IMG/VR virus record: IMGVR_UViG_3300047499_000113 | Span: 1 to 64,000 of that record | Reading direction: 5' to 3' (one strand) | DNA length: 64,000 nt | Shown here: positions 1 through 60,093 of the stretch, piece by piece | Position numbering within the stretch: the first letter of the stretch is position 1 | Layout: each line of letters begins with the position of its first letter | Notes under the pieces: generated by a model | Seen by the model: only the letters and a program-made list of their open reading frames with translations | What the model was told of the DNA's origin: nothing | Databases searched by the model: none | Program-made: the position numbers and the translations under genes

Positions 1-435
1 GTAGACGCGTACGAGCAAATACTGGTTGCTCCGCAGGTTGTGGCCCTTGATGACCTTCGCCATCTGGCCAGGGAAGAGCGGGAAGGAGACCGGGCCAGGG
101 ATGTTGACCTTGCGGCCGACCAGGAGATCCGCTTGCGACGCCTTGCCCTGACCGCTCGGGTGCTTGTGGTCACCCTTGTCCGTGTACGCCGGGTTCTTCA
201 GGACGACGTAGTAAGCCTCCGGGGCCGTCACGTGGGTGTGAACGGCGCGCTCGACGGGCGCGTCCAAGAACTTCTTGGTCTTCGGATCGAAGACGACGAG
301 CTTGTCGCCGTCACCGAGCGTGACCTTGGTGGGTCCGACGTAGACGTTGACCTCGCCTTTCGTGTTGTCCCGAACGTGGATCCACTCGTTGGGTGCGAGG
401 ACGATGTCCCTGTTCCTGCGGTCTTCTTCGGCCAT
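1..435 (-). CDS. Major vault protein (MVP)-like protein, N-terminal part (runs off left edge)
   Basis: Not in ORF track. ATG at 435 preceded by AAGGAGG; open to base 1. Translation MAEEDRRNRDIVLAPNEWIHVRDNTKGEVNVYVGPTKVTL...VTAPEAYYVVLKNP...GRKVNIPGPVSFPLFPGQMAKVIKGHNLRSNQYLLVRVY matches MVP N-terminal repeats (cf. recalled human MVP YIHVLDQNSNVSRVEVGP, VTVPPRHYCTVANP, PFPLYPGE). Confidence 0.8.
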   Translation of the reverse strand, partial: MAEEDRRNRDIVLAPNEWIHVRDNTKGEVNVYVGPTKVTLGDGDKLVVFDPKTKKFLDAPVERAVHTHVTAPEAYYVVLKNPAYTDKGDHKHPSGQGKASQADLLVGRKVNIPGPVSFPLFPGQMAKVIKGHNLRSNQYLLVRVY

Positions 436-477
436 GTGCGCCTCCTTGGGGGCAGATGCTGGAGGTTACACCGGCGT

Positions 478-828
478 CTAGGTCAGCATGACCTGCTCGA
501 CGATACTGTAGGGGCAGCCGTTGTCCGGGTGGATTTTCAGATGGTGCCTGGGCATATAGCACTCAGGGCAACAATCCGCGCTGTGGACAATTGCAGTGGG
601 GCCTTTGCCGTCAGGCCGAACTTCTGTGGGCAGGACGTGGATTTTCAGCCTGGGCCCAGACTCCGTCTTTTCCACGGAGATGGAAGCTTTGCCCACGAGC
701 AGGTCCCACTTCTCGATCTCCGTGAAGGCTTCGGCCAACACCGGCTTCAGGATTTCGAAAGCGGGCTCCTCGATGAGCCAGTCAGGGTCGGCTTCTACTT
801 CGGCGTTCCAATGGCTGATGACTGCCAC
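478..828 (-). CDS. Hypothetical protein with C-terminal Cys/His cluster (possible Zn finger)
   Basis: 116 aa ORF between DnaB and the MVP-like gene; CCPEC-x4-HH-x3-H-x4-C at the C-terminus. Confidence 0.65.
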   Translation of the reverse strand: MAVISHWNAEVEADPDWLIEEPAFEILKPVLAEAFTEIEKWDLLVGKASISVEKTESGPRLKIHVLPTEVRPDGKGPTAIVHSADCCPECYMPRHHLKIHPDNGCPYSIVEQVMLT

Positions 829-844
829 GAAGAGACGCTACCGG

Positions 845-2371
845 TCATGAGCCAGTCATCAGCATGTCGTCCATCGTGAGCGTCGTCGCCCGAAGGAGTG
901 CCTGGTCCGTATTCTTGTCCAGAAGACCCGACTCGATGTGGCGCATGCGCTTGGACTGCCAGATGATCTTACCTATCATCCTGTCGAAGATGGCGTTGTC
1001 ACGGTTCTTCATGCAGCCGAGGTAGAACTTGCCATCTTTACGGAGCTGCGGGTTCAAGTATGTGTACGTGATGACGTCGGCGTCCTGCTCGATGCGGTTG
1101 GCGTACGAAATGGCCTCGAACCCGTAGCGACCGTCTTCTTTGTCCGCTTTGACCTTGCCTTGACGGTTGATCTGGTAGAGACCGAAGACCGGCACCGTGC
1201 GGCCTCGAGCGAAGGACAGTGCCATCATGCGGCACTCGGACACGACGTTGTTGACGGCGTCGACCGTGCTCGTGGTCCGCACCTTCGACCTGAGCCAGCC
1301 CATGTGGTCGAGGACGATGCCATCGCAGCCCCACTTGTTGTGGAACATCTCGGCGCGGCGGTAGACATCTTCGACCGGGGTGCCTGTGATGGCTGACGCC
1401 GGTCTCCAGATGTAGAGCCTGCCGGGACACGTGGCCTTGAAGTCCTGCGCGACTATCTTGAGGCGCTGCTCGCCGAGTTCGTCCAGCTCGTAGTCTCGGA
1501 CCTTCTGGTAGTCGAGTCCGACGTAGCATTGATCCGGGGGCAGCCCGCGGCGCCTGTCCTGCTCGTACCAATCGGTGACGAACTTGCCGTGGGACGAGTG
1601 CACAACGAACAGCTGCCGGCGAAGCTGCTTATACGGCATTTCGAAGATGCCGTAGAAGATGTTGCGGCCGAACAAATACGCGTTGTTGTAGGCGTAGTTG
1701 AGCGCGAGAGTTGTCTTCAGTTCACCCGGGGCGGCGCAGTGGACCCAAAACTCGCCTGACCGGTGACCCTTACACACGGCGTCGACAGGCTCGAGCCCGA
1801 TGATGTTGCGTCCCGCGAACTTGCTGGTGAGCTTGCCTTTGTCGTACTCCTCGAGGAATTCCTCGGCGTCCTCCGTGACGATGCCCTCGAGCTTCTCGCC
1901 GGACTCGACGCGCGAGAAGTCCGACATCTTTTCGTAGATGAAGTTGATGGCGTCGTTGACGCCTTTGAGGACTTTCTTGCCGTTGATCGGCTTCTCGAGA
2001 TTGCGGCCGTGCTCGGCAATCGCTGAAGCGTCGCGCGCTGCAAGGATGAACGACTTGACCTGCTGTTGCTCTTGCTCGGAGCGGACGACTGACAGGAAGT
2101 TGGTGCGGATGTAGGGCTGGGCTTTCTTGAGTTCCTCCAGCCTCGTGCAGACCTCGACCTCATCCTGCTTCTCGAAGTAGTCGCGCACCAGGGTGAAATC
2201 TGGCGGCGCCGACATTTGGTTGAAGAAGGTCTTGAGGTACTGGTAGATCTTGCGGTCTTCCTCGTGCGGGTACTCAAGCTCATACTCTTGCAGGCGCATC
2301 CAGTTCTGGAGCGCTTCATCCACCTCGGGATGACCACCCACCTGCATGAGACTGCGGAGTATTCTATCCAC
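845..2371 (-). CDS. dnaB: Replicative DnaB-like (SF4) helicase
   Basis: Variant Walker A CAAPGELKTT, catalytic Glu in FEM, Walker B GIVLDH, QINR motif, IEQDAD, KNRD arginine finger. Confidence 0.85.
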   Translation of the reverse strand: MDRILRSLMQVGGHPEVDEALQNWMRLQEYELEYPHEEDRKIYQYLKTFFNQMSAPPDFTLVRDYFEKQDEVEVCTRLEELKKAQPYIRTNFLSVVRSEQEQQQVKSFILAARDASAIAEHGRNLEKPINGKKVLKGVNDAINFIYEKMSDFSRVESGEKLEGIVTEDAEEFLEEYDKGKLTSKFAGRNIIGLEPVDAVCKGHRSGEFWVHCAAPGELKTTLALNYAYNNAYLFGRNIFYGIFEMPYKQLRRQLFVVHSSHGKFVTDWYEQDRRRGLPPDQCYVGLDYQKVRDYELDELGEQRLKIVAQDFKATCPGRLYIWRPASAITGTPVEDVYRRAEMFHNKWGCDGIVLDHMGWLRSKVRTTSTVDAVNNVVSECRMMALSFARGRTVPVFGLYQINRQGKVKADKEDGRYGFEAISYANRIEQDADVITYTYLNPQLRKDGKFYLGCMKNRDNAIFDRMIGKIIWQSKRMRHIESGLLDKNTDQALLRATTLTMDDMLMTGS

Positions 2372-3219
2372 TAGAACCTCTTGCTCGGCTTGACGCCCTT
2401 ACCGAAGTTTTCGAACCCTGACGGCATTTCATCGGGCGCATCGGGCACAGACCGGATTTGCCTGACTGGAGCCTTCGGCTTAGGCGAAGGAGACGCTACC
2501 GGTTCCTTTCTTGGGGTAGGGGCTGGACTCGGACTGGCATGTACAGGCTCTGGAGCGAGCGGGCTGCTCTCGAGCGATGTTGGCGGCGGAGGTACGTAAT
2601 TGTCCGGCAGAATCGCTTCGACCCGGACTTGAACGAGGGAGCGCAGGATGGCGCCAATGGTCTCGGACCAAGCGAAACTGCTATCGTGGAAAGGCTCGCG
2701 TTTGTCCGACACCATCCACAGGGGTTGCTTGCGGTCGAGCCTGTAGCACATCGCCTCTTCGAGAGCACCAGAGGCGGCCCGGTTCTTGGACTTGAGTTCG
2801 TTGAGCTTGATGAGGAGAAGGTCCGGGGATTTGACCAAGTCCTCGATGTTGTTGTAGACAGGCTCTTTGCTGAACTCACCACGAGCCTTGGACGACGTCG
2901 ACCCGACGTAAACGTCGCGGATTTCGCGGTCAGACGTGATGCGGACGAACTTGTTGCTATACTTGATCATGACGAGCTTGATGAAAGCTCGCATGTCAGC
3001 CTGGTAGGCCGTGATGTGCAGCGATCTGTTGATGGCGTCCATCAGGCGCGTCTTGCCGTCCGGAAGAAGCGCCCTGATATGGCCCTCGAGGACCGGGGCC
3101 GTGCGGATGAAGGCGGGCATGGCCGCAGCGATGCGCCGAAGCTCGGCGCACTCGCATTCGTAGAGCTTTCCCTCGCGCTCTACGACGCCTTGTCCTCCGC
3201 AAATCGCACAGGCAGCCAC
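2371..3219 (-). CDS. DnaC/IstB-like helicase-loader homologue, degenerate ATPase
   Basis: N-terminal Zn motif CAICGGQG...CEC; PDLLLIKL at the Walker B position; R..RKQPLWMVSD segment; overlaps dnaB start; no intact P-loop. Confidence 0.6.
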   Translation of the reverse strand: MAACAICGGQGVVEREGKLYECECAELRRIAAAMPAFIRTAPVLEGHIRALLPDGKTRLMDAINRSLHITAYQADMRAFIKLVMIKYSNKFVRITSDREIRDVYVGSTSSKARGEFSKEPVYNNIEDLVKSPDLLLIKLNELKSKNRAASGALEEAMCYRLDRKQPLWMVSDKREPFHDSSFAWSETIGAILRSLVQVRVEAILPDNYVPPPPTSLESSPLAPEPVHASPSPAPTPRKEPVASPSPKPKAPVRQIRSVPDAPDEMPSGFENFGKGVKPSKRF

Positions 3220-3230
3220 GGGCCGGGACC

Positions 3231-5303
3231 TTACACGTCCGAAAAGTCAATCGCGATGTCGGCGATCTTGTAGTTATCCTCAGCAACAGTTGTAAATGAC
3301 TGCTTGGCGGTTGACTTCTTGACTTTCTTGGCTTTGACGGGCGTCTTGGACTTGTCGGTGAGCAGACCCTGGAGAACGTCCTGCAGAGCGTTCTGCTCCA
3401 CGAACTTGAGGCCATCCTTGAGATTCTCGCCGGCGACTTTGTCCGCGAGCTTCTTCTTGGTCCGCAGGGCTTTGAGTACCTGGTGGTCGATGGTCTTGCT
3501 TTCATCACGCTTGCGGCCGAGGAAGTGATGGGCGACCACCATCTTGTGCAGCGAGCCGATGCGAAGCGCGCGTCCGATGAGCTGCAAGTAATCGCCCCAG
3601 CTCCACGGCAGGTCGAGCAAGCCGAAGTGCTCGGCTGAGTGCAGGTTGAGGCTTTCCGAGCCGGCGGTCGTGATGAGGATGACGTTCACGCCGGAGTTCA
3701 TGTCCTGGAACATCGCACGGTTCTTGTCGCGAACCTGTGCGTTGTTCTCTTTGCCCGTAATGCGCGTGCAGGCGATGTCCTTGTCCTTCAGGGCCTTCTC
3801 GACGAGCGAAATCATGCGCTCGAACTTCGAGAACACGATGACCTTCTGATCGGCCGCCTCGGTCTGCAGAAGCTCGATGAGTGCATCGATCTTGGACGAC
3901 GGGCCCTTGTACGGCTCGCCGTTCTCGTCCATCAGCAGCTCGGGCGAATCGCACGCCTGCTGGCACATCACCATCGCCGACAGAAGCTCGGAGTCGGACG
4001 TGTCCGGGTCGTTGTTCTTGTTGATGAGCCCGTTCTCGGCCAGGTCATACAGCTCTTCCTGCAGCTCGGTCAGCTCGCACTCGATCTCCATCGAGACAAG
4101 CTCCGGAAGCTCCTTGGCCACGTCGTGCTTTTTGCGCGACAGGTAGTAGGGCTCGATTATCTCGACAAACTTCTCGAGGTTCTTGTACCCGACGACCAGC
4201 AGGACGTTGCGCCCTCCGCCGATGGACTGCAATCTCGTGACGCAGAACTGCTCGTGGAAATGCGAGATCTTGGGGAAGAGCGACGGTTGCAGAATCCGGA
4301 AGAGGCTCCAGAATTCCATGAGTCGGTTCTTGACTGGCGTCGCCGTCAGGCCGTAGGCGCGCTGGGCCACCTTCGCCAGCATTGCCGTCTTCTCGTGGAA
4401 CTGGCTCTTGTGATTCTTGAGTTTGTGCATCTCATCCATGACGAGAAGGAACTTCAGATGCGGATGAGCCTTTCGCATCTTCTGCACGTAGTCGATGATC
4501 CCCGGAACCTTCTTCGGGGGAGCGAACTCGTCGCGCAGCGCCTTGAGCTTGGCCTCCGCGTCTACGGCTGACTGCCTCCGCTCGAGGTAAGCTGTGAAGA
4601 CCTGCGCGTCCGCTTCCGTGAACATGCTGGGCGGCTGCGGCTTCGTCTCGTAATTGACGAAATCCGCCAGGTATTGGTGCACCTGCCACGGGTGCTCACG
4701 GAAGTAGGCGTCGAACTTCTCCTTCTCAGCTTCGAAAAGGGTCGCCGCTTCTTTGCTCGCCGCTCGAGCGGCGTCCAATTCCTTCTGGAAGCCCTTGCGC
4801 GGTGACTTGCCCTTCTCCTTGATCACCGCCTCGTGCATGTCGTACATGATCATGTCGTACGACAAGATCAGCAGGCGTTTCTTGTCCGGGTCGTACGTGG
4901 AAAAGAACTGCTCGTAGATTTCGTGCCGGCGAAAGGGTGAGCCGTGGACTGTGACGGCCTCCATGCCCTGCATGAAGCGCTTCGTCTCGCCTTCCCACTG
5001 GAAGAGTGCCGACTTTGTGGTGATGATGATAGGAACGTATTCCGGCTCCTTCATCCAAATGTAGCCGATGGTCGACAGGACCTCGAGCGTCTTGCCGAGG
5101 CCGGTGTCGTCTCCGAGGAGCATGCGCTCGACTTGGAGCATGTTGAGGACGCCCTGCGCCTGGTAGACGCGCAGCTTGACGTCCCTCTCGTCGCCGTACT
5201 CATCCGTGTACTTTTCCCTAAGATAGGGAGACGGCTTGAGCGCCAGATCCGGCTTGGTCCGAATCTGTCGGATTTTGGCGAGAAGATCGGGTGAGATCAT
5301 CAC
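3231..5303 (-). CDS. SNF2-family (SF2) helicase/ATPase
   Basis: LGDDTGLGKT (I), VMDEMH (II), LTATPVKN (III), KVIVFS (IV), AGSESLNL (V), QLIGRALRIG (VI). Confidence 0.9.
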   Translation of the reverse strand: MMISPDLLAKIRQIRTKPDLALKPSPYLREKYTDEYGDERDVKLRVYQAQGVLNMLQVERMLLGDDTGLGKTLEVLSTIGYIWMKEPEYVPIIITTKSALFQWEGETKRFMQGMEAVTVHGSPFRRHEIYEQFFSTYDPDKKRLLILSYDMIMYDMHEAVIKEKGKSPRKGFQKELDAARAASKEAATLFEAEKEKFDAYFREHPWQVHQYLADFVNYETKPQPPSMFTEADAQVFTAYLERRQSAVDAEAKLKALRDEFAPPKKVPGIIDYVQKMRKAHPHLKFLLVMDEMHKLKNHKSQFHEKTAMLAKVAQRAYGLTATPVKNRLMEFWSLFRILQPSLFPKISHFHEQFCVTRLQSIGGGRNVLLVVGYKNLEKFVEIIEPYYLSRKKHDVAKELPELVSMEIECELTELQEELYDLAENGLINKNNDPDTSDSELLSAMVMCQQACDSPELLMDENGEPYKGPSSKIDALIELLQTEAADQKVIVFSKFERMISLVEKALKDKDIACTRITGKENNAQVRDKNRAMFQDMNSGVNVILITTAGSESLNLHSAEHFGLLDLPWSWGDYLQLIGRALRIGSLHKMVVAHHFLGRKRDESKTIDHQVLKALRTKKKLADKVAGENLKDGLKFVEQNALQDVLQGLLTDKSKTPVKAKKVKKSTAKQSFTTVAEDNYKIADIAIDFSDV

Positions 5304-5326: not shown

Positions 5327-5767
5327 TCAGTGCTTGGAAGCGCCGCCGCAGTTCCAGCCCATTGCCTGCACGTCAGCCGAGGTCTTGGCACCGAGCAGAT
5401 CGTTGCAGGTGAGGCCCTGCTGGGTCTTGGGGTTGCGGATGACGCGGTTGGCCTGCGCGAGCGACAGAACCTTGGCGCAATCCGCCTGCTGGGCGCAGCC
5501 CATGGCGGCCATCTGAGCGCATGCCTTGGCGCACGGATCCGTGGGAGCCGGAGGAGCTGCATCCTGCGCCGGAGTCGGAGCGGGAGCTGCATCGACCGCA
5601 GGCGTCGGCGTGGGGGCCGAATCCATGGTCGGGACAGGCGGCGGAGGGCTTCCGTCGGGTCCTCCGTCCGGTGCCGGTGGGTTGGGCGGGGTCGGAGGGC
5701 ACCCCGCCATGCCGAGCGTCGACACGGCCAGGAAGAGCCCGAGAAGGGGGATCGCTGTCTTCTTCAT
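5327..5767 (-). CDS. Lipoprotein with Pro-rich linker and Cys-rich C-terminal domain
   Basis: Likely start ATG 5767 (MKKTAIPLLGLFLAVSTLGMAGC, lipobox), overlapping the peptidase stop; PPTPPNPPAPDGG linker; six Cys in the C-terminal domain. Confidence 0.75.
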   Translation of the reverse strand: MKKTAIPLLGLFLAVSTLGMAGCPPTPPNPPAPDGGPDGSPPPPVPTMDSAPTPTPAVDAAPAPTPAQDAAPPAPTDPCAKACAQMAAMGCAQQADCAKVLSLAQANRVIRNPKTQQGLTCNDLLGAKTSADVQAMGWNCGGASKH

Positions 5768-6636
5768 CACGCAGCCGCCTTCTGGACCTGGACGTCCATC
5801 ACGTAAAGCTCCCAGGCCGCCTTGACCCACGCCTCGGAAACGAGGCAGCGACCGTTGTCACACCAGCCGGTACCCCAGCTGTTGGTGAGGATGAAGGTGC
5901 GGGTTCCGTCCGCGTTGGTGGTGTAGCCCGACAGGTAGATGGCGTGGCCACCGCCGTTCGGGTCGTTCGTGTTCGGAGGCTGCGCCACCTGGCCCGGCTG
6001 CAGCTGCTCGAACGCCGTGTCGACGAACGCCGCGACGTAGACCGGGAAACCGGCGGCGAGAGCCGCAGCCACCTGATCCGAAACGTTCGCTGCACTCGGG
6101 TCGATGGCGTACTCGCCCGTGACGATGGTGGTGCCAGCTGCCTGGAGCTGGTTGGCGTCCACCTCGTTGTTGACGTTCGCCGGCTGAGCCGTCGTGTCAG
6201 CATCCGACCAGATGTCGGAGTTGCGGCCGTCCGGAGTCGGGCCCTGCATCGGAGCAACGCCGAACTGCGCGCATGCCGTGAACACGTCCGCGGGCTCGGC
6301 GCCCGAGTCGGTGAGAAGCGGCAGGGGCTGACCCGCCGGCGTCTGCGCCGCGCGCTCGATTCCTCGAGTAGCGGCGTACGTCTCGCGCGGCGAAGGCTCG
6401 AACCCGATCTGGATGCCCGCCTTGCGGCAAGCTGTGGAGGTGCTGCCCGACAGCGAGTGCGCCGTGCAGGAGCCCGTCTGGCCCTGATCGAGCCGCGGGG
6501 GCTCCCACTGGGACAGGTCGACGGACGCCGGAACGGTGGCCGCAAGGAGTGCGGCAATCGCCGGGTGGGTGGCCGCCGCTTTCTTGGAGGCGACCTTCGA
6601 CGGATGACTGCGCTTTGCACCCTTTGCGAACGGCAT
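5767..6636 (-). CDS. Papain-family (C1A) cysteine peptidase
   Basis: DQGQTGSCTAH (oxyanion Gln plus catalytic Cys), GGHAIYLSGY (His), TNSWGTGW (Asn); PASVDL mature N-terminus after a short basic propeptide. Confidence 0.9.
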   Translation of the reverse strand: MPFAKGAKRSHPSKVASKKAAATHPAIAALLAATVPASVDLSQWEPPRLDQGQTGSCTAHSLSGSTSTACRKAGIQIGFEPSPRETYAATRGIERAAQTPAGQPLPLLTDSGAEPADVFTACAQFGVAPMQGPTPDGRNSDIWSDADTTAQPANVNNEVDANQLQAAGTTIVTGEYAIDPSAANVSDQVAAALAAGFPVYVAAFVDTAFEQLQPGQVAQPPNTNDPNGGGHAIYLSGYTTNADGTRTFILTNSWGTGWCDNGRCLVSEAWVKAAWELYVMDVQVQKAAA

Positions 6637-12728: not shown

Positions 12729-15700
12729 TCAGAACAAGAGGTACCAGAATTCGACGATGTCGGTCGTCAGAAGAGCTGGATTGCTCCCGGAGACGATGTA
12801 TGTGACGGTTTGGTTGGTGGTGCCGCCAACTGTGTAGTTGAGCCCGTACTGGAGTTTGACGCCGTTGAGGAACATCTGCACGGCGGTCGGATCGAGCGGG
12901 CGGTTCGGAAGGGTGAAGGTGAGCTGCCCGTCCGAGGTGACCGGAAGGGTGATCTGCTCCTGCGAGTTGAGGGACACGTCCGACGACCCGAAGAACAGGG
13001 GGTTGTCGAAGATGTTCGTAACGAAAAGGGCCGGCGGAACCGGGAGAATGCCGGTGTTGACGTAGCCACGGCGCTTCTCCAAGGGCTTACCCAGGAGACG
13101 GTACCTGTCGACAGCGGTGAACCCTTCGTTGGTACCGGCAGCCGAGTGCGACACGTTCGTATCGCGGAAATAGGCCGGCACCGCCTGGGTGACGACGAAC
13201 ATCTGCAGCTCGTTGCCCATGTGGATCTCGGTGGAGCCCACAGACTCCGGCTGAGAACGCACAAGGAATGCGGAGCCGACGAGAAGCGACCCGGCGTTGA
13301 TGTTCGGGCGGACTTTCGGGAACCTCGAGGAGATCGGACCACCGACCCAAGGTGGCGTGACCGACCAGGCCGCACCTCCACGCGTCGTCTTGAACACCGT
13401 CGTACTGGCAGGATTCGCGGTGCCGTCGACTCGAATGACGGCTTCGGAACCAACGCCAGTCGTGCCCGATGTGTTGCCGCAGATGAACTCCGTGCCCTCC
13501 CAGGTCGATTCGCCAGGCGCGCTCGGGGCGAGCGACGCCTCGTAGTTCTGGAAGGTGAACGTGCCGACTGCGTTGGCGCCGACACCCGTGGAGTTGATCT
13601 GCTGGTAGAGGGTCTTGCCGACGAAGTCCTTGTCTCGGAAGTAGATGCCCATCGGCAGTTGCGAAGTGGCACCTGCGAATTCCGGCGGGACGAAGTTGTC
13701 GTAGACCGGATCCAAGCCACCGATCTTGGTCGGTGGGCGAGTCGCGACACCTGTGGGCGGAGTCGGTGAGTTAACGACCGGAAAGAGCTGGTCCGACCAG
13801 TCCTCGTAACCAACACGGTTCGCCGAGAAGCGACGTGCGAGATCGAGCAGGGTCCCGGCGTAATCCGGCGGGTTGTTCGGTGCCTCAAACGTGTCGAGGA
13901 GGGGTAGCGGCTGCGAACCCGAGAGACGACCCGTCCCGAGCGACATCACGAAGCTCGTGGACGCGAGCACCTCGAAACCGGTCTCGTTCGGGAGAGCCAG
14001 GCTCGAGATGGGACCCAGCGGGCTCGTGAAGATCGACGTGGCTTCTCCGACCGTCAGCGGTCCGAGCCTGTAGAGGTCGTCCGAATAGGCGTTCTGAGTT
14101 CCGAATGGATCGCCTTGGTACGGCTGGCGGCTGTAGTAGATCGTCAGCTCGTTGTTCGAAGCATTGCTCGAGAGCGGCGCCGGCGCGATGATGCCGATGG
14201 TGCCGTCCTGCGAGGTCGAGAACTGATCCTGCAGGATGACTCCGCCGCCCGTGTTCTTGGCGACGCAAACGCGTCCGTTGGTCTGCAGGAAGCCTCGATC
14301 GAATCCGAACAGGACGCACTCGACAACGAACTGGGCATTGTTGAAGTTCGTACCCGAAGGTGCCTTCGTGAAGTCCAGGCAATCGGCCGAGAGGATGAAG
14401 TATGGGTCTCCGTTGGCGTCCACGTTGAGCAGGACGGTCGGGCCGTCGTAGCTGTCGTGCAGGAGGTTGACGTCTGCTCCCGGCTGGCCAACGAACTGGC
14501 GATTGTTATTGAACGGGCTCGAGATGGGCTGCACCGCCGATCCCTGACGGAGATAGACGCCGGTGATGCGCGCCGGCGCGAGGAACGGCGGGAACTGAAT
14601 GCCCTGGAAGGGGCCGCCGTTGGCCGACTGGAGAGAGTTGTTCGTGTACTTGGTACCGAAGATGGAGAGAATACCCGCCTGCGTGCCGTAGGTCTCGCCA
14701 ACATTTGGCGTGACGATGTAGTAGCCCGGCGCGCTCGGATACGAGACGATATTCTCGTTGTAGCTCGAGTTGTTCAGGTTCGGGCCTTCTTGCGCCACGA
14801 ACATGAAATTCAGGCCGCTGGGAAACACGGCGTTGGTCGTCGCCTGCAGAGGGATGTGATGCAGACCCGGCCGCGGCAGATACTCCCACGGGATCTCGAA
14901 GTAGAGGCTGTTGACACCGTGGTAGAACAGGTTGAGGGCGTCGATGGTCGTCTGAGGCACGACCGGGTGCACGATATTGACGCCGTTCTGGTCCAGGCTC
15001 GGCATCGCGCCCTGGTACTGGATCGTCGGATTGAAGTACCAGTTGAGCTGCTGGCCGTTGCGCGCGAGAAGCTGCGGGACACGGACTTCGCGGTACGGAG
15101 CCGCGTAGACGGTCTTGCTGCCCGGGTCGACCATCACCTCGGAAGTCCGCGCGAGATTCCGGTTTACACCGGTCTGCACGTACGGCGAGTCGCCAAGATA
15201 CGTCGGGATCATGCGCGAAATGCCGGACAGGCCGCCGCGCAGAAGGGTCTGCGTCGTGTTGGACGCCGACCCGCGGTACCAAACCGTGTGGATGTAGTCC
15301 GGCTTGTGAGACAAGCCGCGACCAGCTCCGTAGACGACGGCGAAGTCGATGTGCATCACGACATTCGTGACGTAAGGAATCGCCGTGTTGCCCTGGAGAG
15401 CGTCCTTGAACTCCTGCAGTTCGGTGTCGACGCCACCGCTTTGGAAGCGGATGACGAGGTTTCCGTTCACATCGGTGGTGACGCTCAGGCCTTGACCGCT
15501 CTTGAGGACCTTGTTTCCCTGCGTCGGGAAGAGAAGATCCGGGTTGGAAGTCGTAGGCGCGGTCGTACCGGCCGACGTGACGACCTCGCCAGTCGTCATC
15601 GTGCCCGAACCGCCTGTGCACCCCGTGAAGCTCGAGCCGGAGATGGAGGTGTAGTTGACCGTCGAGCCGTTGATGTTGATGGTTCCGCCGCTCGAGGAGA

Positions 15701-17579
15701 AGCCCGAGGTCGAAGCCACGAAGATGGTTGCCTGAGGCAACGTCTGGCCGTTCGAACCTGCGGCGATCGTCGTCGATGGCAGCGATCCGTTGGGGTCCGA
15801 CGTCATTCCTTCGAATCGGATGACGACGGCGTCCGGGTCCTCGGAAGGCAACACGAACCTGACTTGATCCGAGTCCGAGCCCGGCATACCCGCGGCGAAT
15901 GGGGAGAGCTGGATGGTGATGGAGTCGCCGTTCCACCACGATGGGTAGAGGCCGCCCGACAGTCGGTTACCGGGCACGTGGATGGGCGGGGTGCCTGTCC
16001 ACAGAACCTCGACGTTGTAAGGGGCGACCGTGAACTGCAGCGGCGTGTCGATGAGCTGCGAGTTCGAAGGAACGACCACCGGGACGTTGAAGCGCTGCGT
16101 GGTCACCGCATCCGAGAACATGCGGCGGTTTCCATCCGGAGCATCGAGTCTCGTCAGCCCTCCGACGAACACTGAAGAATCGGTGATGCGGTCGCCGTAG
16201 AAGGTAACGGGTCCTGCCGAGTTCGTGCTTCCGAAACGCTTCCAGGTCGAGCGCAGGTTGCCCTTGAGAAGCTCGATGAAGTTCGTCTTGAGGATGCTGT
16301 CGTAGTCGAACTTGTCCGCCACCGAGTGGCGCATGTCGAGAATGTCAGTCGCCGCGATTTGGTCGGCGAACAGCCCGTCCGGGCGAATCGTGTACTCGAT
16401 GAGGGGAGTACCCGAGTTGTGCGCGCGGATCGTCGTCTGGAGCTGGCCGCGGTCGATGGTGCAGGTGAACGACGTCGGCGAGTTCTGCACGACGTTGTTG
16501 ATGCGGATGATCTCGTCGTTGAGGTAAAAATACGCCTCGCCAAACGAGTTCATCGTCTGCAGCACGGTGCCGGCGATGCTGTTGATGGTGAAAGACGTGT
16601 CGGTCAGCCCCATTGCGGATTGGAGCGCGAGAGAGGCCGTGTACATCGTCGCGTCGGAACGGGAGATGGCGACGCTATTGCGATTGAACGCGCCGGCGAG
16701 GTTGCCCGTGTCGGAAAACCCTGCTCCGTTGCGACGGAAAACGGTGCAGATGGGGATGGCATAAACGTAGCCGTCTGAGGTTCCGAAAGTCGCCGGGTCG
16801 CCGGTCCCCGCACGCCAAAGGCCCGGGTCGCCGAGCGTCTGGCGCATGTTGGTGAAGGGGACGCTCGAGGGCTGCAGCAGGAGGCCCTGCGCGAACACGA
16901 GACTCGGGTCGAACCCTTCTGGATACTGCGCGATGTTGATTCCCTGGACGACGCGGATGCGGTACTGGACCTGCACGCGCTTCGTGGTCGGGAAGTTCAT
17001 GTCCGGATCGATGAGGTCGTCCGGGATGTAGCTGAAACCGCCTTCGACGTTGCCGAATCTATAGATGAACCCGCGCTGCGGCTTGCCTGGTGCGACACCC
17101 GGAGGGGCGGGATCCACGTCGATGACTGCCTGCCACACCTCGAGGAACACGAACTCGGCGATGTTGCCGCCCGTCGAGGTCGACGGAGGATTGAGCAGGA
17201 TTTTGTTCCAGGTGTCGACGTCGTCGGCTGCCAGCGGGGGCTCGCCGGTCTCCGTCCCTGCCACAGGGATAGGCCACCCGTTGACGACAGCCCACGTGAG
17301 GTTACGGACCTCGCCCGGAGTGTTGCGACCGAAATAGAACAGGTTCGAGTTGTTGACGTTCGTGAAGAAGTCGGCCTTTGGATTGGCCTCGTTCATCAGC
17401 CATCCGGAAGGCATCTCGGCGCGGAGAGCCTCTGCACGCGATTCCCAGTCGACAAGCGAAACGAGGTTCAGCTCGGAGTCGAGCGGTGGCTTGTTCGCCT
17501 GGAATACAACGACAGCAAATTGCTTGTCGCGGTCGTCCGTGTACCGGGAGACTCCGGGGCCTAGGGGATTAGTCGGCAT
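12729..17579 (-). CDS. Large baseplate/tail-fibre-attachment protein (1616 aa), paralog of 26891..29632
   Basis: N-terminal VVFQANKPPLDSELN, FLEVW, TTKRVQVQYRIRV, DGYVYAIPICTVFRRN, RPDGLFADQI motifs shared with 26891..29632. Confidence 0.7.
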   Translation of the reverse strand: MPTNPLGPGVSRYTDDRDKQFAVVVFQANKPPLDSELNLVSLVDWESRAEALRAEMPSGWLMNEANPKADFFTNVNNSNLFYFGRNTPGEVRNLTWAVVNGWPIPVAGTETGEPPLAADDVDTWNKILLNPPSTSTGGNIAEFVFLEVWQAVIDVDPAPPGVAPGKPQRGFIYRFGNVEGGFSYIPDDLIDPDMNFPTTKRVQVQYRIRVVQGINIAQYPEGFDPSLVFAQGLLLQPSSVPFTNMRQTLGDPGLWRAGTGDPATFGTSDGYVYAIPICTVFRRNGAGFSDTGNLAGAFNRNSVAISRSDATMYTASLALQSAMGLTDTSFTINSIAGTVLQTMNSFGEAYFYLNDEIIRINNVVQNSPTSFTCTIDRGQLQTTIRAHNSGTPLIEYTIRPDGLFADQIAATDILDMRHSVADKFDYDSILKTNFIELLKGNLRSTWKRFGSTNSAGPVTFYGDRITDSSVFVGGLTRLDAPDGNRRMFSDAVTTQRFNVPVVVPSNSQLIDTPLQFTVAPYNVEVLWTGTPPIHVPGNRLSGGLYPSWWNGDSITIQLSPFAAGMPGSDSDQVRFVLPSEDPDAVVIRFEGMTSDPNGSLPSTTIAAGSNGQTLPQATIFVASTSGFSSSGGTININGSTVNYTSISGSSFTGCTGGSGTMTTGEVVTSAGTTAPTTSNPDLLFPTQGNKVLKSGQGLSVTTDVNGNLVIRFQSGGVDTELQEFKDALQGNTAIPYVTNVVMHIDFAVVYGAGRGLSHKPDYIHTVWYRGSASNTTQTLLRGGLSGISRMIPTYLGDSPYVQTGVNRNLARTSEVMVDPGSKTVYAAPYREVRVPQLLARNGQQLNWYFNPTIQYQGAMPSLDQNGVNIVHPVVPQTTIDALNLFYHGVNSLYFEIPWEYLPRPGLHHIPLQATTNAVFPSGLNFMFVAQEGPNLNNSSYNENIVSYPSAPGYYIVTPNVGETYGTQAGILSIFGTKYTNNSLQSANGGPFQGIQFPPFLAPARITGVYLRQGSAVQPISSPFNNNRQFVGQPGADVNLLHDSYDGPTVLLNVDANGDPYFILSADCLDFTKAPSGTNFNNAQFVVECVLFGFDRGFLQTNGRVCVAKNTGGGVILQDQFSTSQDGTIGIIAPAPLSSNASNNELTIYYSRQPYQGDPFGTQNAYSDDLYRLGPLTVGEATSIFTSPLGPISSLALPNETGFEVLASTSFVMSLGTGRLSGSQPLPLLDTFEAPNNPPDYAGTLLDLARRFSANRVGYEDWSDQLFPVVNSPTPPTGVATRPPTKIGGLDPVYDNFVPPEFAGATSQLPMGIYFRDKDFVGKTLYQQINSTGVGANAVGTFTFQNYEASLAPSAPGESTWEGTEFICGNTSGTTGVGSEAVIRVDGTANPASTTVFKTTRGGAAWSVTPPWVGGPISSRFPKVRPNINAGSLLVGSAFLVRSQPESVGSTEIHMGNELQMFVVTQAVPAYFRDTNVSHSAAGTNEGFTAVDRYRLLGKPLEKRRGYVNTGILPVPPALFVTNIFDNPLFFGSSDVSLNSQEQITLPVTSDGQLTFTLPNRPLDPTAVQMFLNGVKLQYGLNYTVGGTTNQTVTYIVSGSNPALLTTDIVEFWYLLF

Positions 17580-19243: not shown

Positions 19244-19680
19244 CAGTTTATTCCTTCGACAGAAAAAGCTCCCTGGAAGAAATAGACTGTAATCGGACTA
19301 GGAATCGGATTCGCAATGTTCACTTGCACAATGGCGGTGTCTTCCCCCGCAAGATAGCCCAGTTGCTGCAAGGAGACAGTCGTGACGCCCGGAAAAGCGT
19401 TTACGGTCACACCTGCAACGGGCAGGACCACACCGTCCGTCTGAAATGAGAACACCAGTTCGACGGGCGTCGGCGAGTAGAAACTAATGCTCGCAGTGAG
19501 CGAATATTCGATCGTGGGACCGATTTGGAGACCGTTCCCATTCCGGTTTATCCCGTTGAACGAGCCGGAATTTCGCCACGGCACGATCTGAACCGCCGGA
19601 AGCGATACCCACGCGAGAGCTGCTCCCGGGTCGGTCATCGACCAGTCGCTGTACAACTCACCGAAAGTTCCGGGGTCCAC
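19243..19680 (-). CDS. C1q/BclA-CTD-like beta-sandwich protein, paralog 1
   Basis: FGELYSD...VPWRNSGSFN...YFFQGAFSVEG. Confidence 0.6.
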   Translation of the reverse strand: MDPGTFGELYSDWSMTDPGAALAWVSLPAVQIVPWRNSGSFNGINRNGNGLQIGPTIEYSLTASISFYSPTPVELVFSFQTDGVVLPVAGVTVNAFPGVTTVSLQQLGYLAGEDTAIVQVNIANPIPSPITVYFFQGAFSVEGIN

Positions 19681-19693
19681 GCCCGGATGAGCG

Positions 19694-19705
19694 ATAGGAG
19701 CGCTA
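19694..19705 (-). promoter_or_regulatory. Candidate late-promoter motif TAG-N7-AT
   Basis: TAGCGCTCCTAT upstream of 19680. Confidence 0.4.
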
Positions 19706-19709
19706 GAGA

Positions 19710-21275
19710 CTAGAAGCCGGTGATCTGATACTGCAGCGTCTCGGACCCGACCGTGTGCGAGTACACGTTAATGTAGCTCTGGAACGGTGAATTCTGGAAC
19801 GCAGCCGCCCAAAGAGTTCCGGCAGCAGTCGATGATTTGACGGCGTTGATTTGTCCGGTGACGCCGGTGTAAATGGTCGAAACTAGCGTGGCCGAGGAGT
19901 TGTATCGAGCCACCCACTGATAGGTCGACAGTCCCGGCCCATTGATCTGCACGAACATCGTGTTGTCGATGGGATCGTAGTCCAACCGGCCCGTGATGAG
20001 AGTCGTCGCATACGGGGCTGGCGAAGTAGGCAGTGTGATGTATGGAGACCCGTCGGCAAAGATCTGAGCGGTTGATCCTCCGAAAGTCTGGTACGGGGAA
20101 TTCGGATTTCCGCCAATAGACCACATGACGTGGCCAAAAATGTAGTCCACCCAATAAGTAGTCGGGTACGTGTTGGCGCTGTTGTATTGAGTGGACGAAA
20201 CCGTGGCTAGGGTTGAGGCATTCACCTCGAATAGCACTTCATAGTCACCAAAGAAGAAGCTGATGTTGTCAGCTGTGCCTCCCCAAAGGTGACCAGTGCT
20301 GGAGTTGTACCCCATATGGCGGAGGTTCCAGTTGAACCCCGTGTACGTGTCGGTATTGGCTGCAACTGGAGTGACTGCAGTCGGAAACGCCGTGATAGCA
20401 GCTGCCGTATTGAACTGCAGGATGTTCGCGCCGGAAGTGGGGTGGATGTTTATGTCGCTGACGCAAGTATAGAGAGAGCCACCCGTGGCGACTGCTGAGT
20501 CCGGAAAAATGACAGCATATTGAACGCCACCATAGAGTGGATTCATGTACCCAACGACATTGAGCGTCGACTTGTCGATGACTAGGATGTACACGGTGCT
20601 ACCCTGGCCAGATGGTAGCGCATACACATAGTTCGCATCGGCTGCGAAGGCTGCCGCTCCGCGATTCGAACCAGTCCAACCGGCGGATACGGGCACGTTG
20701 ATCACCGCATGGGTGGCGCCCGTCGTCCCATCCAAAACTGGAATGACGGCAGTCGTTTGCTCGACATCAGCGACGTACATCAAGTTGTTGACTGAGTCGT
20801 AGTACAAGTCCTGGATGAATTTGAACGGCGTAAGTGGGAATGGCGTCGGTTGAACAGCCTTTGTGATGAAAACGTCTGCGGTGACGTTCACGACAGCCTG
20901 AGTGCTGCCGGTGTTGAACACCATCTGCAGGCGGTCAGGACTGGATGCTGCAGTCACTGTGAAGGTCCAGGAGGACGCGGAAGAACTTCCGAACTGATCA
21001 ACAGTATCCGAGGCACTAACTACCGTGACGCCGGCGATTCGACTTACCGCGAACCTCTGGACGAAGGACTGAGAGGCTGTCGAAGTGAGGATGTAACCGT
21101 TTGCGCTCACGCGGATTTCAATGGTTCCGCTGTAGCCACTCGGCAGGACAAAGTACGTGTTGATCGGCCCGACAGCACCAGAGGGACCGGCGTTGACCAG
21201 TGCAATAGACTCTCCGACCGCGTTGCCGGGTGTGGACCCGGTGAGAGTGACGTCGGGGAGAGGCTGGAAAGTCAT
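19710..21275 (-). CDS. Putative receptor-binding protein: shared N-terminal adaptor plus beta-propeller
   Basis: N-terminus PLPDVTLTGSTPG...SFVQRF...SSWT...SPDR...TGST shared with 21278..22735 and 22738..23790; propeller blades DLYYDSVNNLMYVAD etc. Confidence 0.65.
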   Translation of the reverse strand: MTFQPLPDVTLTGSTPGNAVGESIALVNAGPSGAVGPINTYFVLPSGYSGTIEIRVSANGYILTSTASQSFVQRFAVSRIAGVTVVSASDTVDQFGSSSASSWTFTVTAASSPDRLQMVFNTGSTQAVVNVTADVFITKAVQPTPFPLTPFKFIQDLYYDSVNNLMYVADVEQTTAVIPVLDGTTGATHAVINVPVSAGWTGSNRGAAAFAADANYVYALPSGQGSTVYILVIDKSTLNVVGYMNPLYGGVQYAVIFPDSAVATGGSLYTCVSDINIHPTSGANILQFNTAAAITAFPTAVTPVAANTDTYTGFNWNLRHMGYNSSTGHLWGGTADNISFFFGDYEVLFEVNASTLATVSSTQYNSANTYPTTYWVDYIFGHVMWSIGGNPNSPYQTFGGSTAQIFADGSPYITLPTSPAPYATTLITGRLDYDPIDNTMFVQINGPGLSTYQWVARYNSSATLVSTIYTGVTGQINAVKSSTAAGTLWAAAFQNSPFQSYINVYSHTVGSETLQYQITGF

Positions 21276-41844: not shown

Positions 41845-42690
41845 CTAGAAATCGCTGCTGTGATCTTCTCCGACCACTTGCTTGGCCCGTTTGAAGCCCG
41901 CGGTGTCCAACCCGGCGATCCCCTCGACGAACTTCCGGAAGTCCTCGTAGCTGTAGTTCGAGAGCGCGAAGGTGAACGAATCCGTCACCTTGGCTGGCTG
42001 CGGAGAGACCCCGTTCGGCCCGGGAGGTTGCTGCTGGCCGATGTAGGTATCTTGCAGGATATACTTGAGTCTGTAGAGCGTGTGCGCCGGACGGATGATC
42101 CCGAGCAGAAGTCGGATGTTCTTGTCGGCCAGGAAAATGTCGACGTTTTGGTTGGCGAACGGCAAGAAGATATCGACCTCGAAGCCGAACTCATCCGAGA
42201 TGTCGAGACCTGACGCCGGATTGCGCGCCTCGAGGAAGTTCTCCCGCACGATGACTGTGCCGCCAGTCACCAGTTCGACAGCCTTCTGAATGGACGCTGG
42301 AATGGAGCCCTTGAAGTAGATGGAGACGAGCTGCTGCAAGAACGCGCGAAATTGCAAATCAGTCTGGTCGATGGTCGGCATTTGGCCGGCGCCGTAGCCG
42401 AACGACTTCGGGAAAAGCATGACAGTGAGGACCTGCCACAGATACTCGCCGCGCGTCGCCGAGAAGTATGTGTCGTTCTGGATGTCCGAGAGCATGAGGC
42501 GGACTCGAGCCAGAGCGATAGCCATCGCCTTTAGCTCGCGCGCATAGTTCGGGCCGTCGATCTTCGAGGTGAAGTATGACGACAGAAGCGAAATGAGAAT
42601 GGTGAACTCGCGCTGAGTTTCCTGCAGGAGACGGTTGTTGTACTCCTCACCACTCTCGAAGACGTTCTGGTTAACCCGAACGATGGCCAT
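41845..42690 (-). CDS. Baseplate wedge protein, P2 gpI/XkdU-like
   Basis: Follows baseplate J; FRAFL...YFKGSIPASIQKAV...LLGIIRPAHT motif. Confidence 0.7.
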   Translation of the reverse strand: MAIVRVNQNVFESGEEYNNRLLQETQREFTILISLLSSYFTSKIDGPNYARELKAMAIALARVRLMLSDIQNDTYFSATRGEYLWQVLTVMLFPKSFGYGAGQMPTIDQTDLQFRAFLQQLVSIYFKGSIPASIQKAVELVTGGTVIVRENFLEARNPASGLDISDEFGFEVDIFLPFANQNVDIFLADKNIRLLLGIIRPAHTLYRLKYILQDTYIGQQQPPGPNGVSPQPAKVTDSFTFALSNYSYEDFRKFVEGIAGLDTAGFKRAKQVVGEDHSSDF

Positions 42691-45600: not shown

Positions 45601-46142
45601 AGAGTTGTGTCTGTACTGATGGCCGCGCTATATGGAATGAGGTCTTGGTTGAGCTTCAGGTACCCGGAGCCTGTCCCTTGGGAGCCCGTCGAGCAGTAGA
45701 CGTTGAAGCCGACAGGTGCGATGGGCGAAGAGTCGGACCAAACGATGTCGACGCTCGTCGCGTGCCTGTTCAGCGAGATTCCAGTCGGTGGCGACTGGAC
45801 GGTGAGCAGGTCGACATCCGTGACCACCGTCACAGTGATAGTCGAGGTTGGGCTCACGCTGCCATTGAGGTCGATGGCACGGAGCTGGATGGTATTGATC
45901 CCGAGGTTCAGCTGCAGGCCGGACGGAATGCTCGCCGGATTGGGGATCGTGAAATTCGGCAGCACGAGCTGCACGAGCGTTGGATCCGATACGAACCCCG
46001 CGCCGTTGACGTTGATCTGGACGTCGATCGTCGACGAATCGACCGAGCCCGAAAAGAACAACGCGAACAAGTTCGTGGTCATCACCAGGTTGATGGTGGT
46101 GCCAGAACCGTCAGGGAAGTTGATCAGGGGCGCGGTCGCCAT
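42690..46142 (-). CDS. Baseplate J-like (gp6/gp47-type) wedge protein
   Basis: Likely start ATG 46142; IPGSTVRE, DSLAQNYGVTR, AQTPGSAGNVPAG, GTPGGY...PGVLQV...GKVDVYV. Confidence 0.85.
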   Translation of the reverse strand: MATAPLINFPDGSGTTINLVMTTNLFALFFSGSVDSSTIDVQINVNGAGFVSDPTLVQLVLPNFTIPNPASIPSGLQLNLGINTIQLRAIDLNGSVSPTSTITVTVVTDVDLLTVQSPPTGISLNRHATSVDIVWSDSSPIAPVGFNVYCSTGSQGTGSGYLKLNQDLIPYSAAISTDTTLLPLSDVSYDFPNPAVANFNTAQLKVVATTTDPVTQETIATQAVNFIPLITADAYRYEVTVTKLLQVNNFLFNHDRTASLGSGILNNDTFSVVDNSQPLYYVITAVYFDTTTGVLQESRYSAELTGAPLPLNTQVRGIRIRDQSSVAQDYIGEIQKTNPTLSLIPGSTVREVHIEPFSNEIQKAYFLADFVSRSKSFPALLAIDDPGLTGISIPVAQSQYKQNLKTALTVFDDATVQTIINSAFDSLAQNYGVTRPGPLPAQVTQTFYTTALPTKDLIVIQGAIVSSSTNTAAPTFVTKGQVTLSAANAQAYYNPQTKRYEITVQMIAQTPGSAGNVPAGSLDTVSSGATGLQTINEVSANFGQDQGSNLDVAELSMNALSSLDTGTPGGYQKTALATPGVLQVAVIQAGDPFMERDWDPVRMKHIGGKVDVYVKGTNERTVTETFAFQFQEANNVKFTVIDAVNLIFQAQDSRLSQNNPIEQMLFNPSQDLGLYNHSILPTAAYDLTGVVILNYNTIQLSTLIPQPTTNIDDFIEGDYRYRSNNQFTATLQPILRVTSVVGQVSGALDSVNGYTLYKLQDPLIDGESTIATDYIEINQIGSVPSGASIAVNNELHVLIGEINEPLDSVGVNTFSLNVYSQDRTIQYNGPSSPNADYLIIPGTQTTPLQIVRSSSSTIPTGATVSVDYEHDENFAVTYVINDVLQQLQSQYATMRHATADVLVKQAVENPLSTEMTVQLNPNANQVSVDSNIRTAVTVLTDSKPVGGTIYQSDMTQTVKDSDTGVQFIVQPFTQLTLATGAMRLRDSIPPDGIFLSSLSQFNNAVYILQQALPFNTTDGGGPATIFHGVFMDNLQMTPAMSLATVGSAVGQAWIIGAQGAIIQGYSDDATLAPTYVTPSAIAAARIALTANHVVISLNNGIQPPDVPGNHTFSATYIVNKDTGSKDISTSSVEYLTPGSLTITYRAATGS

Positions 46143-46175
46143 GCCTACCCACAATACGGGGATAAGAACTGGATG

Positions 46176-59691: not shown

Positions 59692-60093
59692 ATGGCGAAG
59701 GTACTCATTCAGGTCTGCACGATGGCTGGGGCGCTGATCGATAACGGCAAGTGGATGGTCGATTTCCCGGCCTCGCTTCAGCAGGACCAAACGGTGTCCT
59801 TCAGCATGCCGATCAAGGACGCCGCGCTGATCGGATACCTCGGCAAGGTCCAGCAGCGGAGCTGCATCGTCGACAAGGAAGGCAACGATTACGTTGTCTC
59901 CGTGTCCTGCAAGGTCATGCGGATCCGCCACATGGTCAACACGACGAGCCACACGGCGGAGTCGATGGCGTACGCCACACCTGAAGACCGGCTCGCCGAA
60001 CACGTAATGCTCTATATGCTCATTCCGAGCAAGTGCGATCCGAAGTTCGTGCGCGTCGTGCGAGGAGCTGCCGCAGCTCCGCCGGCGGCCTAA
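59692..60093 (+). CDS. Hypothetical protein on the opposite strand within the baseplate operon
   Basis: 133 aa with GC3-rich codons; stop overlaps the stop of the convergent hub gene. Confidence 0.65.
   Translation: MAKVLIQVCTMAGALIDNGKWMVDFPASLQQDQTVSFSMPIKDAALIGYLGKVQQRSCIVDKEGNDYVVSVSCKVMRIRHMVNTTSHTAESMAYATPEDRLAEHVMLYMLIPSKCDPKFVRVVRGAAAAPPAA

Follow-up and report, generated by a model that had tools for sequence, protein, structure and literature searches.

A major vault protein homologue encoded beside the replication genes of an uncultured tailed jumbo phage

What does the gene cut off by the left end of the virus record IMGVR_UViG_3300047499_000113 encode, and what could a phage use its product for? 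We analysed positions 1 to 64,000 of this IMG/VR record (the window, 64,000 nucleotides (nt) in all), where an earlier note had proposed a homologue of major vault protein (MVP), the shell protein of eukaryotic vault particles, on the minus strand at the left edge. The proposal of a phage-encoded MVP homologue was borne out by a fold model of the visible fragment and by full-length relatives that carry Vault_3 and MVP_shoulder domains. We conclude with high confidence, from this predicted structure and these comparisons and not from a direct sequence match, that the fragment is an MVP homologue. Two features define it in the window:

1–435, minus strand: 5′ part of the MVP homologue, the first 145 codons, with two beta-repeat domains (translation, fold model and relatives)
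441–447, minus strand: Shine-Dalgarno sequence AAGGAGG with a 5-nt spacer to the ATG at 435–433 (sequence reading)

When positions 1–600 of the window were read, a minus-strand ATG was found at 435–433 with AAGGAGG at 447–441, 5 nt away, and the TAG stop of the upstream open reading frame (ORF) was located at 480–478 on the same strand. Translation from this ATG gave 145 stop-free codons up to base 1, including WIHVRDNTKGEVNVYVGP at residues 18–35, VTAPEAYYVVLKNP at residues 69–82 and GPVSFPLFPGQ at residues 114–124. All parts of the gene that the earlier note had described, from the ribosome-binding site to the open edge and the quoted peptides, were thus present in the sequence and its translation. 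Its absence from the ORF list was also real, because the list skips ORFs that run off an end. Base 1 of the window is the end of the 240,015-bp contig, so the truncation of the gene belongs to the source record rather than to the window, and the gene cannot be extended within its own record. The leftward extension that had been suggested therefore failed. The 3′ remainder was not detected at the other end of the contig by a protein-pattern scan with the downstream part of the relative L004, by an exact 26-mer from the sister genome L014, or by a scan with the downstream part of the sister protein. The full-length product is expected to be ~885 amino acids (aa) long.

The GC content of the fragment at codon positions 1, 2 and 3 is 0.63, 0.36 and 0.88, a strongly coding pattern for a genome of 59% GC, and its effective number of codons (Nc) is 37.8. 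The DNA of the fragment is 96% identical to that of the sister genome, and the encoded protein is 41–76% identical to the N-termini of many full-length homologues. Taken together, these four measures indicate that the fragment is not a chance ORF.

Direct sequence searches with the fragment gave little. Pfam returned only Vault_2, at an E-value of 0.011 and with 16.6 bits against a cut-off of 23.6, which is sub-threshold. The PHROGs search gave nothing meaningful, phmmer found no match among PDB sequences, and an N-terminal family profile of 38 sequences matched no MVP in the PDB but only, by chance, an oxidoreductase. The PADLOC and NCBIfam libraries gave no match for MVP, and no near-identical DNA was found among phage records. 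The fold gave a different picture. An AlphaFold2 model of the 145 residues, built with alignment A3, had a predicted local distance difference test (pLDDT) score of 88.6 and a predicted template modelling (TM) score of 0.77, and consisted of two beta-strand modules. When this model was compared with the PDB by Foldseek, the top 15 matches were all MVP, with query TM-scores of 0.36–0.61. Eleven of these 15 had TM-scores of 0.55–0.61 and a root-mean-square deviation of 3.5–4.9 Å over ~120–125 columns at 20–26% identity, and the MVP matches included murine R1-R7 crystal structures as well as human, rabbit and rat vault shells. The first non-MVP match had an E-value above 0.6 and a probability below 0.1. 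The claim that the peptides match the repeats of eukaryotic MVP was therefore not upheld by sequence (Vault_2 sub-threshold, phmmer and profile negative against the PDB) but was upheld by fold.

The full-length relatives supplied what the fragment alone could not. The fragment is 76% identical to L004, with the last ~45 residues essentially identical, and ~75% identical to L015; overall, its relatives of ~885 aa are 74–76% identical to it at their N-termini. Searches by tblastn and pattern scans recovered homologue ORFs of 806–900 aa. L004, the closest full-length relative, has 886 aa and matches MVP_shoulder (7e-26) and Vault_3 (4e-9) above the cut-off, and L015 is likewise full-length with both domains. 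The same holds for L001 and L002, the copies in LR756501 and LR756500, whose MVP_shoulder matches (1e-28 and 5e-27) are accompanied by Vault_3 matches above the cut-off. Thus, the Pfam check on vault domains was negative for the fragment, with its sub-threshold Vault_2, and positive for its relatives. A family profile of 65 sequences aligned with human MVP residues 476–824 (4e-34), a span that extends from the last repeat across the shoulder and cap helix to the start of the cap ring, and the alignment ran through residues 647–824, from the cap helix region onward. Pieces of the family hidden Markov model extended the correspondence towards the N-terminus, with family positions 218–372 aligning with human residues 275–419.

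Full-length copies in the sister genome and in close relatives share one layout, that of a complete MVP: beta repeats in an N-terminal array lead into a variable disordered insert, after which come a last repeat recognised as Vault_3 and an SPFH-like shoulder, and the protein closes with a cap helix of ~135 residues and a conserved helical C-terminus. AlphaFold modelled L004 with a mean pLDDT of 69; residues 10–160 and 500–810 are well predicted, residues 414–494 are disordered, and a single continuous helix of ~135 residues occupies 679–814 with pLDDT 72–87. The C-terminal cap helix that the earlier note had proposed to look for is therefore present in this relative, while the window copy ends at codon 145. 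Likewise, the further repeats and shoulder beyond the fragment were found in the full-length relatives and in the sister copy. The best 16 PDB matches of the L004 model were all MVP, with E-values down to 1e-29, and SPFH cages followed from 5e-8 on. When the profile was compared with itself, modules at ~13–54, 194–259, 334–373 and 496–551 showed weak reciprocal similarity (P ~0.002–0.004), as expected if they are diverged tandem repeats. The best-conserved part of the protein is its N-terminal domain, with 60% mean column identity across phages and bacteria in alignment A3. Of the other distinct related loci first examined, all 10 carried intact full-length ORFs.

The sister genome of the window phage, L014, is a 242,266-bp JGI (Joint Genome Institute) contig. 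The proteins of the six genes nearest MVP are 91–100% identical between the two, and the DNA spanning the MVP start is 96% identical (alignment A2). L014 carries the MVP gene on to a normal stop with Vault_3 and MVP_shoulder matches; the shoulder in this copy (L014/P0013) is PF11978. The alignment also revealed one difference:

287–299, minus strand: 13 nt present in the window and missing in L014, around L014 position 9980 (DNA alignment A2)

The window contig breaks ~290 nt beyond this site, inside the same MVP gene.

The carrier is an uncultured tailed jumbo phage of ~240 kb and 59% GC. Genes in the window lie almost all on the minus strand, and matches to a baseplate wedge protein (gp6-type, phrog_6, 4e-19) at 42690–46154 and to a tail protein at 12729–17579 identify the genome as that of a tailed phage. 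The region 8850–63884 holds very large minus-strand ORFs of 1288, 1616, 913, 2080, 1154, 778, 1789, 795 and 1264 aa; a weak match to an unannotated PHROG at 60090–63884 is, with the baseplate and tail matches, the only family match of these ORFs. Eight large window proteins had no match in Pfam, vault-related or other, and two Ro60-sized window proteins had no TROVE-like match in the PDB. In the window, L014 and L015, neither a tRNA nor any Rfam family, vault RNA and Y RNA included, reached the threshold.

What might such a protein do in an infected cell? We are inclined to think that the MVP homologue of ~885 aa is produced by this tailed jumbo phage along with its replication proteins and self-assembles into a cytoplasmic vault-like cage. 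Synthesis would coincide with that of the replication proteins, and by likeness to eukaryotic MVP the product would build a closed vault-like cage in the host cytoplasm. The repeats and shoulders would pack side by side, the cap helices would bundle, and two halves would be joined N-terminus to N-terminus. Our best guess is that this cage would sequester or protect proteins, RNA or small molecules during infection rather than serve as a genome compartment.

Self-assembly is suggested because all modules of the eukaryotic shell are present, because the N-terminal domain is the best conserved and because eukaryotic MVP assembles without a partner. Conservation of the N-terminal domain would be expected from a role as an interface; in eukaryotic vaults, the extreme N-terminal domain joins both halves. 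That MVP stands alone at bacterial loci, with no conserved neighbour, also fits an autonomous shell. The mammalian vault is a closed cage of two halves with 39 + 39 copies. By our estimate, the lumen of the canonical vault is roughly 5 x 10^4 nm3, and tightly packed DNA of 240 kb would occupy roughly 5 x 10^5 nm3. Because the lumen is ~ten times too small for the genome on these figures, we judge a genome or replication compartment to be unlikely; the anti-defence shell that the earlier note had also raised is a speculative role. Human MVP forms vault-like particles in E. coli without any other protein (PMC9778704), an analogy that makes assembly in a bacterial cytoplasm plausible and no more.

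Several observations weigh against a vault-like cage. The window shows only 145 of ~885 MVP codons, and the remainder is not at the other end of the contig. In L014, the 13-nt deletion shifts the MVP frame after ~codon 45, and the gene there was called from an internal start as a protein of 828 aa; this hints at dispensability or decay, or at polymorphism, or at an assembly error. The L004 model has pLDDT below 50 at 220–258, 311–332 and 414–494, and ~6–8 repeats are discernible in it (with 220–332 of low confidence) versus 9 in rat MVP, so that the predicted cage geometry may differ from that of the rat vault. Counted as modules, ~6 of beta type can be traced in the model, along with an insert that is helical and disordered. 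The residues of the human NAD+/ADP-ribose pocket are not conserved, and only the preceding G-x-P-K is kept. Among the MVP neighbours in L014, L015 and L105, there was no TROVE, PARP or VWA match. The Rfam scan of the window, L014 and L015 showed no vault RNA near MVP, and the searched literature holds no assembly, expression or cargo data on a prokaryotic or viral MVP.

We considered whether the protein forms a membrane cage of the SPFH/Band-7 type, like HflK/C, flotillin or prohibitin, that organises or shields membrane proteins in infection. The shoulders of L001 and L002 exceed the Band_7 cut-off (26.2 and 27.1 versus 23.6 bits; none was reported for L004), the fold matches that come right after MVP are flotillin, HflK/C, prohibitin, stomatin and erlin cages, and matches in BFVD are mostly SPFH proteins of viruses. 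However, the MVP fold matches are better than the SPFH matches by ~20 orders (1e-29 versus 5e-8), and the long repeat array and the Vault_3 match are specific to MVP. The N-terminus is charged (MAEEDRRNRD...) and runs straight into beta repeats with no hydrophobic anchor; the SPFH-like part begins past residue ~505–565 in the relatives. We thus regard the SPFH-type membrane scaffold, which the earlier note had offered beside the vault-like cage, as unlikely. Among the BFVD matches was an 802-aa 'prohibitin domain-containing protein' of Harvfovirus sp. (A0A3G5A4K1), whose alignment to the phage MVP model spans 930 columns (E 2e-10) and which, judged from this model comparison, may be an MVP-like protein in Nucleocytoviricota.

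The genes upstream of MVP in the window are as follows:

478–828, minus strand: 116-aa ORF directly upstream of MVP, no family match (ORF calls and locus comparison)
845–2371, minus strand: DnaB-like replicative helicase (Pfam DnaB_C 2.4e-12; phrog_19 5e-25; NCBIfam phage_DnaB)
2371–3219, minus strand: 282-aa protein, kept between SNF2 and DnaB in relatives (same position in L014 and L015)
3231–5303, minus strand: SNF2-family helicase (Pfam SNF2-rel_dom 5e-37, Helicase_C 1e-17; phrog_62 8e-76)

The earlier note had placed MVP downstream of SNF2, loader and DnaB genes on the same strand. The SNF2 and DnaB assignments are supported by Pfam and PHROGs, but the 'loader' label is not, as the 282-aa protein has no family match in Pfam, PHROGs, NCBIfam or PADLOC. 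The 116-aa ORF has no match in these four libraries either, and among the loci compared its homologue occurs in the sister genome only. The window, L014, L015, L105 and the P0018 contig share the order SNF2, unknown gene, DnaB, 0–3 small ORFs and MVP. Past MVP, some relatives have a few small ORFs or a homing-endonuclease-like gene; a DnaG-type zinc-ribbon primase comes next, followed by DnaJ on the opposite strand, a family-A DNA polymerase and a dCTP deaminase. The arrangement SNF2–unknown–DnaB–MVP persists down to 62% MVP identity, usually with the primase next. It is gone in the next-deeper relatives (59–60% MVP identity) and in other huge-phage contigs, where MVP lies among many small unidirectional genes without an assigned function.

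We also considered whether MVP is a component of the virion or of its assembly, such as a scaffold, inner-body or decoration protein. Giant tail-like and baseplate genes do lie on the same strand, starting ~8.8 kb upstream, and a 2023 preprint suggested possible shell formation (bioRxiv 10.1101/2023.11.10.566534). Nevertheless, MVP sits between DnaB and (usually) primase in five related genomes, is found among small early-type genes in other huge-phage contigs, and has close homologues on 1–11-Mb bacterial contigs without phage context. A virion role is therefore improbable.

Other observations were made at these loci. In the L014 SNF2 gene (L014:3138-6251), a 348-aa insertion that faintly matches LAGLIDADG splits the Walker A motif (GLGK | T), and the window SNF2 (690 aa) is without the insertion and otherwise 98% identical to the L014 copy; at the sequence level, the insertion shows the pattern of an intein. 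Two further L014 genes look foreign: an Endonuclease_7-like gene at L014:12523-13143, between MVP and the primase (GC at third codon positions (GC3) 0.52, Nc ~61), and a gene at L014:6359-7051 (GC3 0.47, Nc ~61), between SNF2 and the 282-aa gene and absent from the window. Both are probably mobile insertions of the homing-endonuclease type. The full-length DnaJ gene, with J domain, zinc finger and C-terminal domain, lies two to six genes downstream of MVP in all three relatives (L014:14276-15382, L015:14564-15757 and L105:12011-13093), where it runs on the opposite strand and is flanked by the primase and DNA polymerase A. A papain-family cysteine protease homologue (Peptidase_C1) at window 5767–6636, by the replication genes, is kept in L014 and L105. 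A 16-bp GC-rich hairpin lies ~20–65 nt past the MVP stop at L015:12683-12718 and L105:10706-10741 and may be a terminator or an mRNA-stabilising element; it is missing in L014 and L004, and a conserved terminator after MVP was dropped as evidence.

How widespread is the gene, and on which side of the phage–bacterium divide does it belong? At E <= 1e-5, more than 6,290 proteins were recovered by a word-indexed search, and the 120 best of them are 49–100% identical and 645–951 aa long, nearly all with Vault_3 and MVP_shoulder; 16 of the 120 are on contigs of 100–463 kb and none is on a contig larger than 1 Mb. An exhaustive profile search of 1.84 billion representatives gave 1,836 clusters at E <= 1e-3, of which 779 reached E <= 1e-30. 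Among 50,697 phage records, the MVP gene was present only in LR756500, LR756501 and LR756503, two distinct assemblies of uncultured huge phages of 462 and 735 kb, and these records included no cultured phage with the gene. MVP homologues are nonetheless common on phage-like contigs of 150–460 kb, in addition to the 735-kb huge phage. When bacteria and archaea were searched with one genome per species, 456 stretches encoded an MVP relative, which puts homologues in at least 456 bacterial species genomes. The earlier note was right that bacteria including myxobacteria have MVP homologues: the carriers include 1–11-Mb chromosomal contigs of Nannocystis, other Myxococcota and Vulcanimicrobiota, and further Plesiocystis, Enhygromyxa, Thermoflexibacter, Rifleibacteriota and Sericytochromatia. 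The bacterial homologues are 45–52% identical. No conserved neighbour of MVP was found at the bacterial loci, the second-largest cluster there consisting of antisense shadow ORFs.

An unrooted FastTree tree of 102 sequences, with the 80 best loci as the bacterial sample and with long viral branches, has a branch with a support of 100 that sets the window lineage, another viral contig and 23 of 23 sampled metagenome proteins apart, and grouped 64 bacterial rows with a support of 99. Two rows labelled as metagenome-assembled genomes (MAGs) fell inside the phage-side group and have phage-like genes for a sigma factor, an HNH endonuclease, a methyltransferase and a clamp loader. Neither group took in the further viral lineages LR7565xx, L006/8/9/10/13 and L012. 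Given the missing root, the long viral branches and the limited bacterial sample, we draw no conclusion about the direction of transfer. Dense small unidirectional genes were also seen on L099 (463 kb; its NCBI copy is labelled Candidatus Pacearchaeota) and L097 (328 kb, labelled Magasanikiibacteriota), and several 300–460-kb MVP contigs deposited as MAGs of archaea or the candidate phyla radiation look like huge phages binned with cells.

These data allow us to weigh whether MVP is a host-derived passenger gene with no phage-specific role, perhaps a decaying one. Bacterial homologues at ~45–52% identity, the frameshifting 13-nt deletion in L014 and the incompletely visible window copy would all be compatible with a passenger. 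Against this, MVP ranks with DnaB and SNF2 among the genes of strongest codon bias in the genome (GC3 0.83, Nc 36), unlike the adjoining homing-endonuclease-like gene. On the tree it lies in a deep clade made up of phage-type contigs, apart from the bacterial rows, its position is constant down to 62% identity, and the ORFs are intact at each of the 10 related loci mentioned above. Sequence comparison thus shows MVP to be an apparently long-standing resident of phages, and we give a passenger gene little chance.

Very improbable, finally, is nucleotide binding or sequestering (NAD+ or ADP-ribose) through the shoulder pocket against NAD-depleting host defences: the pocket of the human SPFH shoulder does bind NAD+, ADP and ADP-ribose (PMC12280208; 10.64898/2026.05.01.722283) and NAD-metabolism genes lie <10 kb from MVP in two huge-phage contigs (NAD kinase in L099, NAPRTase in L100), but the family consensus has T, T, D, E and D at the positions of human R507, P508, H509, P565 and K573, for which reason pocket conservation was rejected, and NAD genes do not adjoin MVP in the window lineage (L014, L015 and L105). 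NAD kinase, NAPRTase and a nucleotidyltransferase-like gene were seen near MVP at L099:11800-12771 and at L100:1-371 and 19289-19771.

A self-assembling vault-like cage is the reading that we think most likely. The gene itself is a further MVP of the already reported phage-MVP type: the question that the earlier note left open, whether phage MVPs had been described, is answered by a preprint (bioRxiv 10.1101/2023.11.10.566534), and 'major vault protein' is the JGI name for many of the best 120 proteins. Two aspects seem undescribed in the searchable literature, namely MVP as a recurrent and well-conserved gene of jumbo and huge phages, with the size of that clade, and MVP locked into the replisome cluster of one lineage. 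The searched literature contained no paper that links vault proteins to jumbo or huge phages except one on Borg elements (PMC12660748), and no experimental characterisation of a prokaryotic or viral vault. We raise tentatively, and regard as rather doubtful, the possibility that many jumbo and huge phages build vault-like cages as part of an early or replication programme, a second phage-made organelle besides the chimallin nucleus, and that phages may be a major reservoir and vehicle of MVP among bacteria. Several deep viral lineages do lie outside the single sampled bacterial clade on the tree, but the reservoir idea is weakened by the rooting, by faster viral evolution and by the limited bacterial sample.

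The function of vaults has puzzled researchers for about 40 years. If phage MVPs form cages, a phage–bacterium pair would be a far simpler system than animal cells in which to study the content and purpose of vaults, and the cages would be new self-assembling nanocontainers. A practical drawback is that all MVP-carrying phages found here are metagenomic and uncultured and that about one-sixth of the gene is visible in the window.

Among known systems, the Borg elements of Methanoperedens offer a parallel in that a vault protein is predicted on a giant mobile element, with a predicted vault-like assembly (PMC12660748). They differ in having an archaeal host, a vault gene that is sometimes beside histone genes, and TEP1-like TROVE proteins, none of which was seen here. 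Chimallin (ChmA) of Chimalliviridae is likewise a self-assembling intracellular shell of jumbo phages, but the resemblance is a functional analogy only. Its fold is unrelated: it was absent from the 50 best PDB matches of the fragment and L004 models, the MVP models being the only ones compared. The SPFH cages (HflK/C, flotillin, prohibitin, stomatin and erlin) resemble phage MVP in their shoulder fold and in a long helix that forms a closed dome by bundling. Unlike phage MVP, which has no anchor, they are membrane-anchored and have no N-terminal repeat barrel.

Closer to the window gene are the 'first viral MVPs', reported in silico only from the human-gut Caudoviricetes ctOa11 and ct2Ri15 (Santos et al. 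2023, bioRxiv 10.1101/2023.11.10.566534). Compared by their description only, these are also full-length, phage-encoded MVPs that group with bacterial MVPs and lie outside structural modules. They come, however, from gut phages with presumed Bacillota hosts, one of which may be a prophage, whereas the window MVP belongs to a 59% GC genome of ~240 kb, to a large clade of 150–460-kb contigs and to a replisome synteny. Bacterial MVP homologues have been known since 2013 (Daly 2013 PMC3762200; Sokolskyi 2019 bioRxiv 10.1101/872010). Those of Myxococcota, Cytophagales, Rifleibacteriota, Vulcanimicrobiota and others share with the phage protein the N-terminal motif, the insert, the Band_7-like shoulder and the C-terminal end, at 45–52% full-length identity. 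On the tree, a strongly supported branch separates them from the phage lineage, and they are chromosomal and stand-alone, in contrast to the phage gene, which is fixed in a replication cluster.

Eukaryotic MVP (rat, human and rabbit; PDB 4V60, 9BW5 and 9Z4W) differs in several respects. The phage protein is only 15–26% identical to it in structural alignments, its N-terminal repeats are undetectable by sequence, its relatives carry a disordered or helical insert of ~80–110 residues before the last repeat, and no TEP1, PARP4 or vault RNA was found near phage MVP in the neighbours or by Rfam. Like the phage MVP, however, the eukaryotic protein has ~860–890 aa in the order repeats, shoulder, cap helix and C-terminal end, and it is the best fold match of both the fragment and its full-length relative.

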